From Chrysemys picta bellii (Eukaryota), in the NCBI RefSeq assembly GCF_011386835.1, contig NC_088814.1:1178001-1242000 (forward strand): 64,000 nt of DNA, read 5' to 3'. Shown here one piece after another: positions 39,790 to 64,000 of this stretch. The position numbers and the translations under genes were made by a program. A model generated the notes under the pieces. It ran no database searches. It was not told where the DNA came from and was given only the letters and a program-made list of their open reading frames with translations. Every line of letters begins with the position of its first letter. The first letter of the stretch is position 1.

Positions 39790-41991
39790 TCACATGCAGC
39801 GGGCTGCCTGCAAACACTTCTGGGGATGCACGTCCGTCTGCGGGCCGTACAGCTTCTCCGCCCACCTCTCAAAGGCCGTCACCATCTGCTTCACCACCTC
39901 ATCGAAGAACAGGTTGGCCAAGTGAGAATGCAGGATGGACTTGAACTCAAAGGAGACCTGGCAAGGAAACACAGATCTTAACAGGGGGCTGCCCTGGGAT
40001 CTCTTTGCCCGATTGCAGCTGCCCTCGACTTCTTGCAGAGGGGCAGCCTGGCAGAACCGCAGGCCGCAGCGTCACTGGGGTGGCCTGTGTAAAGCATTCA
40101 CTAGCCACACACGGTGACCCCCCCAGGAAAGAAGGACTGTTCTGTGCAGGGCCAAGCCTGCCTCTTCCACCCCCGGCCCAGCCTGCCTCGGGGATTGGCC
40201 CAGACGGGAATACTCACATAGAAGTCTAACGTGCAGGTGTCTGGCTGCCCCGGCAGCCCCGGGCTAAACCGCCACAGCGTCTCCAGGTGGCTGAAGATGC
40301 GGCTGTCGTTGCATACAGCCTGCAGGAGGAAAGGGGGCTCGCGTCAGTTTCACCCCACAAGGCTCTCAGCTGATTTCAATCCACCCACACCCAGGAGTGC
40401 CCAGCAGCCAGTGACACTGAGCCCGGGCTGCTGGAGCCAGTAAGAACCGGGCTCCCTGTTCACACACGAGTTCACATCTGCGTGAGTCTGTGAACGTGGA
40501 ACCGGGCTACACAGGCCGTGTGGTAACAGGCGAGCCCCTAGCCGTAGAGAGGCTGGGGCTGCCAGTTCACTTGGGCAGAGGTTCCTTATCCGGCACCCGT
40601 CCCAAGCACTGACTTATTAGTGTGACGTCCGCCTCTCCTCAGCCCTGATCTGCCTGGAACTGGACCCACACAGCTCAGCACCAGATACAACCCTGGTTTT
40701 GTCTGGCTCCTTGGAGCCCGACTGCTGCCTCAGGGGGGGGAGAGGAGCTGCATCTCACACACAGACGCTTTTCGAGAACGGGGCAGACGGGGGTCACAGC
40801 CACAAGCACGAGGCCTGGGACCCACAGGAACCTCCCAGAATGTCTGGCCCTGGGATCCCCACAGGCCCCTAGGCTCCCTGGTGGCCCCTTACCCGGATCT
40901 GGTGCTGGGGAGTCAGGGAGATTTCAGAGACGTAGCGCTCCACGAGGGGCGCGAAGCCGACCTCCAGCTCTGCCCGCGTGAGCCCTTTGCGGTAGGACAA
41001 GACCTTGGAGCTCTTGCACCACGGCACAAAGAGCTGGTAGCTCTCCACGTTGGCCACCACGTTGTACATCTGCTCCATCGAGTAGCTGGAAGAGAGGGGA
41101 GACAAGCCGCCTGTGAGCGGGTGCCGGGCGGGTGACGCGAGACAGGCAGCACCTGGCGCGGGGGTCATCAGGCTGGGAACTCAGCCACCGACCTGCACCC
41201 TCCCCCCTTCCCTGGGCAACAGGCTCCTGCCACTGCCCTCTGCCCACCGGAGACAACTCCCACTCCCAGCCCCTTGGCCAGGTCCCCCCGGCCGAGCCGC
41301 CGAGACCCCCTTGGAGCCGCTGAACACCCCTGCCCGATGGGCGACTCTGGGCTCCACACTCACCCCAGCACTCGCGCTTCCGCGTACTCCATCCGCTTGC
41401 CACCCAGCAGAGGGGCTGCCAGGTTCAGGAAGGTCCGTGCCGGGGGCTGCAGCACCTGCGTCGGGGTGACGGGAGGTCGCTTGGGGGCCTGTGGCGTGGC
41501 CAGGATCCCACAGGAACTTAAATGCCTGAAACACAGAAGGGCGGTTACAGGGGTGAGCATCAGGGCACAGCCCGGGGGCCGCGCAGCCCCTTCAGCGTGG
41601 AACCCCCCCCACGGACAGCTCAGCCCCATGGGGTCCGGCTGGGCTCAGCCCCGGGGATTCAGATCCACATCCCCCCCGACCCCCAACCCTGGGCCCCAGC
41701 GCAGGACTGGGGCTCTTCCGGCGCCCACGGTGCCCCCGCCGGCTGGGGGGCAGGACACGAGAGGACGGGCCCGGGGGTCCCACCCGAATCCGGACCCAGA
41801 GTTGGAGCCACGTAGGGCGGGCAGGGGCCGCCCCATCCCCGGGGCCCGGGACCAGGCGGCGGCCCCCGCTCCCCCCGGCCCGGTCTCGTCCGGTCCGGTC
41901 CTTACCGAGTCCCGTCCCCGGGGCGCGGGCGGCCCCCAGCTCCCCGCAGCGCCCGCAGGAACGCGGCTCCCCGGCTGCTGCTCCCGGCCAT
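39790..41991 (-). CDS. Coenzyme Q-binding protein COQ10-like (START/SRPBCC fold), mitochondrial, 5 exons, 236 aa; probable third paralog
   Basis: Exons 41991-41906, 41525-41364, 41085-40893, 40319-40218 and 39957-39790 (TGA) total 711 nt with an intact frame. Motifs: [74 protein letters not shown]. The N-terminus is an Arg/Ala-rich presequence-like segment. AATAAA on the - strand at 39488-39493. The family call is secure; A versus B orthology is not, so no symbol is given. Confidence 0.93.
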
Positions 41992-59796: not shown

Positions 59797-60002
59797 NNNN
59801 NNNNNNNNNNNNNNNNNNNNNNNNNNNNNNNNNNNNNNNNNNNNNNNNNNNNNNNNNNNNNNNNNNNNNNNNNNNNNNNNNNNNNNNNNNNNNNNNNNNN
59901 NNNNNNNNNNNNNNNNNNNNNNNNNNNNNNNNNNNNNNNNNNNNNNNNNNNNNNNNNNNNNNNNNNNNNNNNNNNNNNNNNNNNNNNNNNNNNNNNNNNN
60001 NN
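59797..60002. other. Assembly gap (N run), next to a (GT)n/(GCGT)n microsatellite
   Basis: A run of N bases. Confidence 1.
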
Positions 60003-60175
60003 CAGTGCATCACTGTGAAGTACTCAGAGGCAGAAGCGATCGTATTGCCAAGACTCCACCTACGGGAAACGGGAACGGACGAAGGTGGAATCAGTCAGCG
60101 CGAGACTCCGGAAGGCAGAATGCTTGTAACAGAGAGTTCCTGTACATACTGGAGCAGAGCATTGTCCCCTCTAGC

Positions 60176-60372
60176 CAGGGCCGGCTCCAGGCACCAGCTT
60201 AACAAGCAGGTGCTTGGGGCGGCCAAGGGAGAGGGGCGGCACCTGCGGCAATTTGGGGGCGGCAGGTCCCTCGCTCCCTCTAGGAGCAAAGGACCTGCCG
60301 CTGAACTGCCGCCGTCGATCGCGGCTTTTTTTTTTTTTTGGGGGGGTGGCAGAAATGCTGGAGCCGGCCCTG
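60176..60372. mobile_element. hAT MITE, young insertion
   Basis: Perfect 15-bp TIRs CAGGGCCGGCTCCAG / CTGGAGCCGGCCCTG and a perfect 8-bp TSD CCTCTAGC (60168-60175 and 60373-60380). Confidence 0.93.
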
Positions 60373-61120
60373 CCTCTAGCCTGGAATCCCGCTTCCTGCC
60401 GCACCGGCGCCGACCCTCAGGCCCATAGAGCCCGTTATTCCCATCGGCTCCAGCATCCTGCCTCCTGGTGTGCAGCCCAGAACTTACACGCCTCTATTCC
60501 AGGCTCCTCTTCCAGCAACGGCTTATGCCTGTTAGCTCACAGCGGCATCCAACCCCCACAATGCACCTGGTCAATCATGAAAATTGTCTGGAATTTTGCA
60601 TATTTCGTTTCTTATAGAACAATCACCAGGACAAGGCTGGTGTGGTGCCTGGGCCTGCCCTCCCTTGCACGGTCGAACTCGAGGGTACCAGGTATACTGC
60701 AGGTGCTTGGAAAGCAATGCAGAGGTGGGGGCCGACGCCTGTCACAGAGCAGGGCTCGAGCAGTCACCATGTGATGGCTGGGAAGCAAACAGTGGAACAA
60801 CTCTGTCTAGTTCTTGCGTGGGGTTTTCCCCCTGAGCACTCTTTGTAGACATTGCGGAGTGAAGCTTCACCCCCCCCCCGGGTCACCCCCCCATCAGAGG
60901 GACAAGGCCACACTGCTAACAATAAACCCGCTGGCTCCTGGGTTCCAGCCCCATTTCCGCTCCACTAGCCCACGCTGCCTCAACTCGGACAAATGCATTA
61001 CAGAGGGGACAAAACTACCTCCCCCCCGGGGCCCCCTGCGTCGTCTGTCTTCTGAGTGCCAAGCCAGCCGGTCCCGAGCAAAGACAAGGAAAGGGAGCAA
61101 TTACCTGCCATCAGCTCTTC

Positions 61121-62666
61121 CTAGTCATCTACCCCCCTCTCGGGGGCCATCAGCTCTCGTCCTTCCTGGTCCCCCTGGTTGCGATCCCTCGTGGACAGCA
61201 CGAAGGCCGGCGCAGCCTTCTCGACGTGGATCCCTCTGCTGCCGAAGTAGCTCTGCAGGGCACTTAGGAACTGTGGGGGAAACCAGGCCTGAGTCAGCGG
61301 GTGCATTAACCACCTGGGTCCTGGTAAGTGCTGGAGCCTGCGCCACAGGGCCTGCTGGGAGCTGCTCTCAGGCCTGGGGCGAAGGGGCTGGACCCCAAGC
61401 TCACCACCTGGTGCACGAGGCGGAACAGCTCCTGGTTCTGCAAGGCTGCTGGGCGTGAGCAACTCAGGCCCACAAACCCACTTCCCGGGCCTTAGCCTCG
61501 CTGGCGCTCACAGCCCCCTGGAACAGCCAGCCCCAGGGCTCCGGTACCTCTGCCCCTCGGCGTACGTGGGGCTGCGCGGCCCGGAGGCTTCCGCTTGCTC
61601 CTTCTCTGTCCAGCAGCGGCAGCCGGGGAGAACGTTCCCAAGGGGCAGCAGCTCTGGGCTTGAGGTGTCATCTGGGGGGGTCTGTTCTCATTCAGTCTGA
61701 AGGGGCTGGCCCGTTCCGATCCCGGGGCACCCGCCTCACCCGCTTTGTCTGGCTGAGAGCCAGGCGGACGGGACGCTTAGGGCTGTGCTGAGCTCAGAGC
61801 GCTCTCACCGTAGGGCGTGGGCACGGGCCCCCGGCCGCCTCACAAGGGGACCCTGCAGGGAGCAGCAGACGGGCTCCTTGCGGAGTCAGGCTGAGGAGCT
61901 GTATCTGATCCCAGCGTGAGGGCGACAGGCCACAGCCTTGCCCTCGTGTCTCGTACAGACACACGTGTTAGCCACGTGACCCTTTGCTTTTAGGCCCCCA
62001 TTGAGCCTGGACTCCCCGGGAGGGGGCTTTGCCTGCTCTCCCCCAGACAATGCCTCCCGCAGACCAGGAGCCGGGCTGGCCCTGCAGGACCCACCGTGGC
62101 ATGAGTCACCATGGCGAGAGCGAATTCATCTGGCACCGGTATTGTGGTTCATTAGTGAGGCCCTAATGGGCACTTGAAATGAAGCCTCCTGTACAGCACG
62201 CGGCTCCAGAGATGGCAGAGAAAGCCCAGAGGCCCCTCTCAAGGGCTTGGCTAATGTAAACTCAGCCCAGAGGTATTTCGCTGTCTCCCCACTTCCTTTG
62301 ATCCCAGCCGCCCCCTCCCCAAGCCTGTGTTATGGAAAAGAAAGAGACTCTCCCCCCATATAATAGCTACAAGGGAGACGCGATCAGTTATTCATCAAAA
62401 GCCGTTCCACACCCCCGCCTTGGGGGTAGCGAGAGCCGCTTCCAGCCCCGCTCAGCTCCCGCGTCGTGGGAATGCCATGTGCCAACAGCCTCAGCCCCCC
62501 GATCTAGGAGAGAGACCAGCCCCCCAGCCCCCCAGCTCACCAGCTCTCTGTTCTGCGGCAGGTCCAGCTGGCTCCATCTCTCACGCTGCAGGGATCTGTT
62601 CTGAACCCAGCCCTGCACCAGCAGGGACAGGAGACCCAGGAAGGTGACTTGAAGCATCAGGTTCAT
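61121..62666 (-). CDS. C2orf66-like small secreted protein, 2 coding exons, 91 aa
   Basis: Exon 62666-62541 encodes MNLMLQVTFLGLLSLLVQGWVQNRSLQRERWSQLDLPQNREL, followed by donor GTGAGC. Exon 61270-61121 follows acceptor TTTCCCCCACAG and encodes FLSALQSYFGSRGIHVEKAAPAFVLSTRDRNQGDQEGRELMAPERGVDD*. The junction is phase 0. There is a hydrophobic signal peptide. The spliced core resembles human C2orf66 as recalled ([30 protein letters not shown]). Confidence 0.8.
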
Positions 62667-63574
62667 CTCTGGAAGTAGCCTCAGCTGACTGTAACAGAAG
62701 AGAACTTGCCATGTCACGGCCCCCGGGGGCCCTCAGCCCAGGGCTGGCCTGGAGCAGCAGCAGCACCCCCCTGGGGGGGCCCGGGAGTGCACCGGGGCAG
62801 GGAAAAGCCTTTGGCACCGAAAGCCTCCCACGGCCAGAGTGGGGCAGGGCTCAGCTGGAGGAGTAACACCAGCTCTTTGTCCTGCGCCAGCACCTCCCCT
62901 GCGGGATACCCAGCCCCAGCCACGGATGAACAGCTCCCTGTGAGGCTCTCGTGGGACAATACCGTCTTCGCTGGTGCACACGAGGGAGAGGGACTGGCCC
63001 ATGGTCACACAGCCAAGCCCCTGCCCTGGCCACTGCTCCACACAGACAGGACAGAGTGAACCAAACCGAGGGCAGAAAGAGCCCCAGGCCCTCTCCAGGC
63101 CACCCACGGGCCTGGCTCTTCACAGGCACCGTCCACACGGGACTCAGCCCTGACGTGGGAGAGGTTTGTTCCACGGGGCTGGGACCGAAATGCAGCGTGG
63201 TCAGACTCTGCTGGGAGAGATGGGGCAGCGTGTTTTCAGCTGGATGACCTGGGCGGTTACTGGAGTGAACCTCAGGGCGTGTCCCACACAACCCATAGAC
63301 CTGGGCTGCGGGGCTCGTGCTGTGACTTGACATTGTGGCTCGGGCTGGAGCCTGGGGTGGGGTGGGGGGCATTAATGGCAGGTCGTTTTCTGCCAAGCAT
63401 GAATTCCGTCCTCAGTGGCAGCGGCTTTGCAGAGAGCGGGAGACGGTGAGCAGCCCTGCATGGACAGGGTGTGGACAGTGGCTATCCCTCTGGCCAGTCC
63501 ACTGCCTAACAGGGGTGGGGGGGGCTCCCTGGTTTTTTCATTATCCTCCTCCCGTGGCTGCTTGCGGGACCTAC

Positions 63575-63647
63575 CTGCTTCTGCCTTTCCTGCCTGTGGG
63601 CATTGCGCTCAGCAGGGCGGCTAGCCCCAGCTCTGCGGCTGAACACC
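63575..63647 (-). other. Candidate upstream exon of the C2orf66-like gene
   Basis: Acceptor ACCTTCCTGCAG and donor CAG|GTAGGT bound a 73-nt exon. The ATG exon has its own strong acceptor (TTCTCTTCTGTTACAG, exon start 62688), which implies an upstream exon exists. Confidence 0.45.
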
Positions 63648-64000
63648 CTGCAGGAAGGTCAGCCCAGTGACGTGATTTGTGTGAGGGGCTGCAGAGGCTC
63701 TGCTGAATTATTATTAGTTCTCAGCAACTCATCCTGAAGCCTTTTAGTGGGAAAAAGTCCTAAAGTTTCCTAAGCAGAGAGTCTTTGCTAACCCTGCTGC
63801 CAGCCGACAGGTTCACCTCTGGGGGGCCCTGGATGGCAAGCGGCTTGCTTTGATTTAAACAGTGGTGAGAAGGATGGGGGCCATAAGACAGCCGTGAGTT
63901 AGCCCCGAAAAGCAGCCAGGCGACCCGGCCCCCCTGTAATTTGAGCACCGCTGCGGGGTTGATAGAGCCGGTCCCAGGAGTCCCTCCTCCCTCCTTTCCT

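Follow-up and report, generated by a model that had tools for sequence, protein, structure and literature searches.

A transcribed two-coding-exon gene beside COASY in Chrysemys picta bellii is an ancient paralogue of C2orf66 with a probably secreted product

The stretch of DNA analysed here (the window) comprises 64,000 nucleotides of Chrysemys picta bellii (NCBI RefSeq assembly GCF_011386835.1, contig NC_088814.1, positions 1,178,001 to 1,242,000 of the forward strand), and coordinates given without a contig name refer to it. Close to its right end, on the minus strand, lies a gene of three exons, two of them coding, which we identify as an ancient paralogue of C2orf66, neither its orthologue nor a young copy. 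Exon 1 (62541..62832) includes a 5′ untranslated region (5′ UTR) that extends to at least 62832 and is covered without a break by a contig of sequencing run X2 (record 13). Its coding part (62666..62541) has 42 codons; it opens with the ATG at 62666-62664 in the context GAGATGA, encodes a signal-type sequence together with the N-terminal half of the conserved core, and ends ...PQNREL. Intron 1 (61271..62540) is a phase-0 GT..AG intron of 1270 nt whose donor is CTG/GTGAGC at 62540 (exon side AGAGAGCTG/GTGAGC, where slashes mark splice borders); its acceptor consists of a pyrimidine-rich stretch ending CCCCACAG/ at 61271, with the border reading ...CACAG/TTCCTA. Exon 2 (61105..61270), for which X2 and X4 contigs cover 61103-61271, reads FLSALQSYFGSRGIHV... 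from 61270, in frame with exon 1. Its coding part (61270..61124) contributes 49 codons, which open with FLSALQSYF..RGIHV and pass into an acidic, variable tail, and the TAG stop at 61123-61121 is followed by 16 nt of 3′ UTR up to the next donor.

That donor (CAG/GTAAT) opens a second intron, located inside the 3′ UTR (60060..61104, acceptor ...CCCGTAG/), after which a non-coding exon 3 begins (60010..60059) and runs below 60010 toward a masked stretch of N at 59797-60002. Since the stop codon lies 16 nt before the last junction, nonsense-mediated decay is not expected under the usual 50-nt rule. Within intron 2, the segment 60144-60411 is an abundant interspersed repeat, where contig depth was in the hundreds to thousands in all four of the runs described below and variants, internal joints, and loose ends were numerous.

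The joined coding sequence (CDS) of 276 nt encodes a protein of 91 amino acids. An initial annotation of this DNA, made from the letters alone, had proposed this product by splicing 62541 to 61270 in phase 0 from an ATG in the context GAGATGA, and our reconstruction reproduces it exactly, including the start codon, the quoted core, and the REL/FLS break. The same annotation held that single open reading frames (ORFs) miss the protein, and indeed neither plain ORF displays it. The transcript exceeds the span it gave, since exon 1 extends to 62832 or beyond and exon 2, whose end is at 61105, is followed by a third exon from 60059. The mature part of the protein, about 72 residues, contains neither a cysteine nor a dibasic site, and the core reads W-x-x-L-D-x-P-x-N-R-E-L / F-L-S-A-L-Q-S-Y-F-x-x-R-G-I-H. 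A profile of clade B, the group of orthologues defined below, scored 52.2 bits on exon 1 and 53.5 bits on exon 2 in the window; with the whole genome scanned it matched this locus alone, which identifies the gene as single copy.

Transcription was assessed with four small runs, guessed to be RNA, whose assembled contigs were aligned on window positions 60010-64000. Between them, the four runs contain about one fifth of the words sampled from the stretch, the amount expected from exons alone. A single 554-nt contig of X2 (organism A) runs from 62832-62541 to 61270-61103 and on to 60057 and below, with 94 nt past the second junction, 48 of which lie on 60010-60057. Both junctions are also carried by X4, which comes from a separate study and a different organism label (organism B). 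The intron 1 joint (61270 to 62541) skips 1270 nt bounded by CT..AC, equivalent to GT..AG on the minus strand, and in X2 it has a depth of 13.1 and 168 nt on its shorter side; the intron 2 joint (60057 to 61103, cut +2), found in X2 and X4, corresponds to the removal of 61104..60060. The junction 62541/61270, which the initial annotation had named as a check on its gene model, is therefore spanned by contigs in two runs with two organism labels. Unspliced contigs over both borders of intron 1 are present at lower depth. As a separate observation, one X3 contig (depth 2.2) at 62270-62560, in a region overlapping exon 1 and intron 1, jumps over 289 nt that have GT..AG ends when read on the plus strand (cut +2); it may derive from an antisense transcript that was spliced, or be an artefact of assembly.

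Upstream of the start codon lies an out-of-frame ATG (62710..62712, minus strand, context gacATGg) with a 43-codon ORF (62581..62817 in the list of ORFs) that ends at 62581 and overlaps the main start. This ATG falls within the X2 contig and is conserved in the turtles Platysternon megacephalum and Natator depressus; it is possibly a translational damper if the mRNA starts 5′ of it. Annotated models with N-terminal extensions in Platysternon, Natator, and alligator trace to ATGs that lie upstream in frame in these species, and the window codon at that place is GTG (62717-62715). The 27 nt just 5′ of the start read RQQRLLPE in frame in Platysternon and alligator (window 62667-62717; L013:10248-10307).

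The initial annotation had placed the protein in the C2orf66 family (Pfam PF15846, DUF4720; curated cut-off 27 bits), and several lines of evidence bear this out. Scanned apart, window exon 1 matches DUF4720 at 12.3 bits (profile 9-37) and exon 2 at 15.3 bits (profile 38-67); each match is weak alone, the two are collinear across the splice, and the Pfam match ends at profile position 67 of 96. The turtle orthologues, which are spliced alike, lie above the cut-off, with 37.6 bits for Platysternon (90% identical to the window protein) and 39.7 bits for Natator (87% identical); identity to the other clade-B orthologues is roughly 35-55%. A hidden Markov model made from eight proteins of clade A (C2orf66 proper) only gave the spliced window protein 46.9 bits, versus 9.5 bits for the best of 5000 shuffles. 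The genome-wide DUF4720 search did not include the window locus in its output because a first-look filter passed three candidates only to scoring; the clade-B profile found the locus cleanly.

The true C2orf66 of this genome lies on contig C11 at 55.60 Mb and encodes 101 amino acids, with exon scores of 41.3 and 79.1 bits over profile positions 2-38 and 37-96. Its exon 1 ends ...PRNRDL/GTAAGG (CGAGATCTG/GTAAGG), and its exon 2, which follows ...TTCAG/TTTTTC, starts FFRTLQGYF. The phase-0 intron right after NR[DE]L thus falls at the same codon boundary in the window gene and in the C11 gene, and in run-on ORFs taken from unspliced contigs of other species (P0021-23, P0030, P0034, P0052) the homology ends at that same intron point. 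Aligned with the C11 protein, the window protein possesses the conserved core W..L....NR[DE]LF...LQ.YF..[RK]G; it lacks the clade-A tail SAFADYE..K..F.N[YF][LF]KG, and its own tail is unrelated. Elsewhere in the genome, C19 carries a weak DUF4720 match (16785794-16785874, L003; 19.6 bits, E 1.39), a single open frame that includes NQSLFFRNFQTFYIKKGLD. The family intron is missing from its usual position there, no syntenic marker lies in the vicinity, and the match was rejected as a family member; it is probably a chance match, and a very old retrocopy is also conceivable.

Relatives were gathered by an exon-2 word-indexed search, which led to the spliced models in Platysternon (misnamed EFCAB7) and Natator, by an exhaustive profile search of 1.84 billion representatives (35 matches), and by a clade-B profile search of 5.8 billion proteins (20 matches); neither of these two very large protein searches returned a clade-B protein from a mammal or a bird. 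For mammals, this is the one result that supports the absence from the human 17q21 block proposed in the initial annotation. By signature and source species, the proteins found fall into three groups. Clade A, or C2orf66 proper, is characterized by the tail SAFADYE...KG and comprises proteins of Elephantulus, Manis, Fukomys, Diceros, Latimeria, Pleurodeles, Amia, and Mustelus together with the turtle C11 gene. Clade B is characterized by NRELFLSALQSYF..[KR]GIH..(R/K)TAP.F and comprises turtles, Alligator, Podarcis, Lerista, three geckos, three salamanders, four frogs (including two Xenopus laevis copies), Arapaima, and three serrasalmids. Clade C, a third set, comprises Pristis, Chiloscyllium, Arapaima, Misgurnus, Ranitomeya, and Engystomops. 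In a maximum-likelihood tree of 33 full-length rows, clade B (19 rows) and clade A are each set off by a starred branch, with support of 98/95 for B and 99/97 for A. The window protein falls in clade B, outside A, and carries the signature NRE[LA]-FLSALQSYF-..-[KR]G-I-H and (T/A)AP.F. The branching within B matches vertebrate phylogeny, and C falls on A's side of the division from B without being part of A. Because A and B are both present in Pleurodeles and B and C are both present in Arapaima, the three clades are paralogues and not divergent orthologues. The description of the gene as a second, divergent family member is therefore correct as to a distinct paralogue, which proves to be one of three old paralogues and not simply a second one. 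Likewise, the gene is hidden from a single-ORF view but not from the databases, where its orthologues are deposited for turtles, lizards, alligator, amphibians, and teleosts.

The long branch of alligator in the tree was discarded as a sign of divergence; its cause is a mis-spliced deposited model. When alligator exon 2 is read directly, it is intact and encodes FLSALQNYFSSRGIHVERTGPAF..., the aberrant tail is gone, and the same stop, 16 nt, and GTAAT donor as in the turtle are found.

The core motif and the Pfam family common to the window protein and C2orf66 would also be expected if the gene were the true C2orf66 orthologue, relocated, or a young turtle-specific duplicate or retrocopy. These possibilities are already refuted. 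The genome has a separate C2orf66 on C11 that bears the full family tail and groups in clade A with the mammalian, coelacanth, and shark proteins, so the window gene is not the translocated true orthologue; its own orthologues occupy the same COASY-adjacent site in teleost, frog, lizard, and alligator. Moreover, the gene retains the family intron, and it is therefore not a retrocopy.

In every genome checked, the clade-B gene is located between HSD17B1 or NAGLU and COASY. The window holds COASY exons at 54.3-55.0 kb (the cytidylyltransferase start) and at 46.8-47.4 kb (the CoaE end), and HSD17B1-like exons follow outside it, 4.8-8 kb from its end; because all of these are on the minus strand, the turtle order is HSD17B1, B, COASY on one strand. 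The order is HSD17B1-like dehydrogenase, B, COASY in Platysternon and Alligator; B, COASY in Natator; NAGLU, B, COASY in Podarcis; and COASY, B, NAGLU in Arapaima. In Xenopus tropicalis, B is followed by COASY 3 kb downstream on the same strand. The other two clades have neighbors of their own: clade A adjoins PGAP1 in Amia, and clade C lies directly upstream of a HACL1-like thiamine-diphosphate (TPP) enzyme in Pristis and Arapaima, with BTD on the other side in Pristis.

Constraint was examined among three turtle lineages, represented by the window, Platysternon, and Natator. The CDS shows no indels and no stops, and the start codon and both splice sites are kept in all three; the frameshifts or stops that the initial annotation had considered damaging to its proposal are thus absent from the two other lineages. 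The p-distance of the CDS is 0.040, 0.069, and 0.054 per pair, compared with 0.080, 0.107, and 0.101 for the intron. Over its approximately 1.2 kb, the intron has 8, 20, and 15 indel events per pair, rates that predict about 1.8-4.6 events per pair in a CDS of 276 nt. About five CDS indels are expected over the three-taxon tree, and by our own arithmetic the chance of finding none is approximately 0.01. Eleven columns are invariant in clade B (M1, L34, N39, R40, F43, L44, A46, L47, Q48, Y50, and G55); all are kept in the window protein, and the amino-acid changes among turtles avoid them. The intron-calibrated divergence and the indel counts were used in place of the ratio of nonsynonymous to synonymous substitution (dN/dS), for which there are too few substitutions. 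We read this as moderate constraint on the protein as a whole, with the core strongly and the tail weakly constrained.

Taken together, these data make it very probable that the window contains an intact, transcribed turtle gene orthologous to an old COASY-adjacent paralogue of C2orf66, with a product that would be secreted; we are slightly more confident of the gene, family, and paralogy taken by themselves. Several points weigh against this interpretation. That the four runs are RNA is a guess, and as assembled contigs they show the existence of the spliced form and not its strand, level, tissue, or start site; they contain unspliced contigs too. The out-of-frame upstream ATG has a strong context and lies inside the RNA contig. 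The Nei-Gojobori dN/dS among turtles is 0.72-1.40, a range resting on only 2-5 synonymous changes, and purifying selection is not demonstrable by this measure. The n-region of the turtle signal sequence is without a basic residue, and the signal call comes from hydropathy alone. The loss of clade B in mammals and birds is one that we infer from missing predicted proteins and not from DNA searches. Finally, no experimental function was found in the literature for any family member.

The dN/dS values and the upstream ATG, along with the 9-12 amino-acid differences between turtle lineages, many of which are in the tail, are what one might see in a transcribed gene that is drifting to a pseudogene in turtles, with its frame kept only by the slow evolution of turtle DNA. 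We consider such decay improbable. It is at odds with the lack of any CDS indel in three lineages, given the intron rates, and with a CDS divergence half that of the intron; the family-invariant residues, splice sites, and start codon are all kept, spliced transcripts occur under two organism labels, and alligator exon 2 is intact on direct reading.

The N-terminus of the protein is hydrophobic, with a 9-residue Kyte-Doolittle mean of up to 2.76 (residues 9-17) and an h-region peak at residues 7-15, and in a simple hydropathy analysis V17-Q18-G19 is compatible with the -3/-1 rule. These features, as far as hydropathy goes, agree with the signal peptide and cleavage after VQG19 proposed earlier, and a hydrophobic N-terminus is retained in all 12 of the aligned clade-B proteins. 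An NRS sequon that had been pointed out is present at residues 23-25, but it is specific to turtles and is not a feature of the family. AlphaFold2 applied to the clade-B alignment predicted a signal helix, a helix at residues 37-53 (predicted local distance difference test, pLDDT, of approximately 86) that coincides with the NRELFLSALQSYF core, and a disordered tail at residues 64-91, with a predicted template modelling score (pTM) of 0.29; because of this low pTM and the disordered tail, the model is too weak for a fold search. The idea of an amphipathic core helix was dropped, since that helix did not stand out in a hydrophobic-moment scan. Across the clade-B alignment there was neither a conserved dibasic processing site nor a cysteine.

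The protein would be predicted to enter the secretory pathway, to have its signal peptide cut near G19, and to be released as a small soluble protein, in which the conserved central helix (approximately residues 37-53) may provide an interaction surface ahead of a fast-evolving disordered tail. A small soluble secreted protein is the simplest reading, since cysteines, a conserved processing site, and any membrane segment past the signal are all lacking. What such a protein might do is more tentative. To call it a signalling peptide is a guess, and we put the chances of an extracellular ligand role at somewhat below even. C2orf66 has been described as small and uncharacterised, with low expression in few tissues (PMC11323535), and one differential-expression table includes a “C2orf66 homolog” of zebrafish (PMC11403715). 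The literature we found on C2orf66 consists of mentions in screens only, with no ligand role reported, and no paper was found that mentions DUF4720 or “C2orf66-like” or that describes the clade-B gene.

It is close to an even bet that the gene and its paralogy are as described here and that the product is not an extracellular signal, but a luminal or secreted accessory protein, a partner or stabiliser of a secreted factor, or a local non-receptor peptide. The lack of cysteines and of a conserved dibasic processing site in clade B would be consistent with such a role, as would the conservation of only a single short helix beside a fast-evolving tail, a helix not marked as amphipathic by the hydrophobic-moment scan, and the lack of any reported ligand role for C2orf66. 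On the other hand, a core of about 30 residues behind a signal peptide has been conserved for more than 400 million years (our own estimate, from the teleost-tetrapod split), which is typical of ligands, and clade A ends in a conserved C-terminal K/Q-G. A terminal K/Q-G of this kind could be an amidation donor.

The neighborhood also bears on how the paralogues arose. A whole-genome search for the COQ10 family (PF03364) found three loci. The window exon (40890-41087, minus strand, 54.1 bits) lies between COASY and MLX, 20 kb from the clade-B gene; a second locus, at 56.018 Mb on C11 (56018451), is 0.42 Mb from the true C2orf66; and the third is at C22:12969672. Because two unrelated families, C2orf66 and COQ10, each have one paralogue in either block, the evidence points to duplication of a block and not of a single gene. 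We take human C2orf66, PGAP1, and COQ10B to lie on 2q33 and COASY and HSD17B1 on 17q21, and both regions presumably belong to the HOX-linked paralogons, with STAT1/4 in one and STAT3/5 in the other, an arrangement in keeping with two rounds of genome duplication in early vertebrates. Clades A and B most likely stem from a duplicated chromosomal block that included a COQ10 gene, in the early vertebrate genome duplications. Cartilaginous fish have A and C, and B occurs in both teleosts and tetrapods, so the splits between the three clades are at least of bony-vertebrate age, and they are probably as old as jawed vertebrates. Clade B would have been lost later in mammals.

The best match to the clade-C profile in this genome (22.5 bits) is at C2:68291851-68292000 (L018:3840-4013, minus strand) and contains four in-frame stops. 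It reads ...ttag/FFRVLQSYYTGQ..., with a stop following, and further on ...NEIFDV directly followed by another stop; the 4 kb upstream yielded no exon 1. The match is about 10.7 kb from, and divergent to, a BTD-like Vanin_C exon (C2:68302735-68303181), which is the clade-C syntenic site in Pristis. From these sequence features, it is probably a decayed exon-2 relic of the third paralogue. BTD (PF19018) served as the clade-C marker in this genome, the HACL1 search (PF02776) having given twin matches on C22 only. These are two TPP_enzyme_N exon sets 28 kb apart (C22:9317710-9318962 and 9345957-9347209), whose first exons both score 63.8 bits and whose second exons score 35.0 and 35.8 bits. They probably belong to another TPP enzyme, not HACL1, and reflect either a tandem duplication of recent date or a segment duplicated in the assembly.

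Among human secreted proteins, C2orf66 is one of those that still lack an assigned function, and it appears to be the only member of an old family to survive in mammals. Its sister genes B and C are intact in Xenopus and teleosts, which offers a practical route to C2orf66 biology, and the present work adds to this genome a small gene, located between HSD17B1 and COASY, which is overlooked when ORFs are viewed singly. A broader proposal, which we regard as speculative and rather unlikely, is that the early vertebrate genome duplications gave rise to DUF4720 as a family of three small, helical, secreted proteins, with A beside PGAP1, B beside COASY, and C beside HACL1/BTD, in which B and C are unrecognised extracellular ligands and losses in the sampled species are lineage-specific. 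Among these species, mammals have A only; turtles have A, B, and a decayed C; frogs have B and C; and Arapaima, the one teleost genome checked, has B and C. If this proposal were true, B and C could be studied in Xenopus and fish, and the receptor may persist in mammals.

Several public records of these genes contain errors. The Platysternon clade-B protein (P0001) is named “EF-hand calcium-binding domain-containing protein 7” (EFCAB7), P0016 fuses an HSD17B1-like protein to exon 2 of a clade-B gene, and the alligator record KYO33367.1 (P0010) has a mis-spliced tail. In frogs and fish, clade-C proteins are labelled “C2orf66 homolog”.

In comparison with known proteins, the window protein shares much with C2orf66 proper, as seen in the C11 copy, Latimeria XP_005989583.1, and Elephantulus XP_006878987.1. 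Like these, it has a length of approximately 100 amino acids, an N-terminal signal-type sequence, two coding exons, and the core W-x-x-L-x-x-x-x-N-R-[DE]-L-F-x-x-x-L-Q-x-Y-F-x-x-R-G with a phase-0 split after NR[DE]L; in both, no cysteines are seen in the aligned mature part, and both are functionally uncharacterised. Unlike clade A, which has FF-R-T-LQAYF and a conserved tail, the window protein has FLSALQSYF..RGIH.(E/D)(K/R)(A/T)AP.F followed by an acidic variable tail. Clade A adjoins PGAP1 and is found in mammals, whereas clade B adjoins COASY and was not found in mammals in the protein searches. Clade-C proteins (Pristis XP_051872856.1, Ranitomeya XP_069586046.1, and Misgurnus XP_055067795.1) resemble the window protein in their DUF4720 match (44.9-47.7 bits), their signal-type sequence, and their core, WKSL..P.NRDLFF..LQSYF.GR; records from sharks, rays, teleosts, and frogs call them “C2orf66 homolog” or “C2orf66-like”. 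The clade-B gene itself is unstudied in the literature, yet it is deposited as hypothetical or “C2orf66-like” and falls within Pfam DUF4720, so it is no new kind of system. Ambystoma mexicanum XP_069489041.1 is an “uncharacterized protein C2orf66-like” in RefSeq, and hypothetical proteins are deposited for Xenopus tropicalis (KAE8574667.1), Alligator (KYO33367.1), Podarcis (CAI5790218.1), and Arapaima (KAL4593788.1). Some of the deposited models differ from the window gene at their ends, through N-terminal extensions in Platysternon and Natator and the mis-spliced tail in alligator, but the deposited clade-B orthologues agree with it in signature, splice, COASY-adjacent site, and clade.

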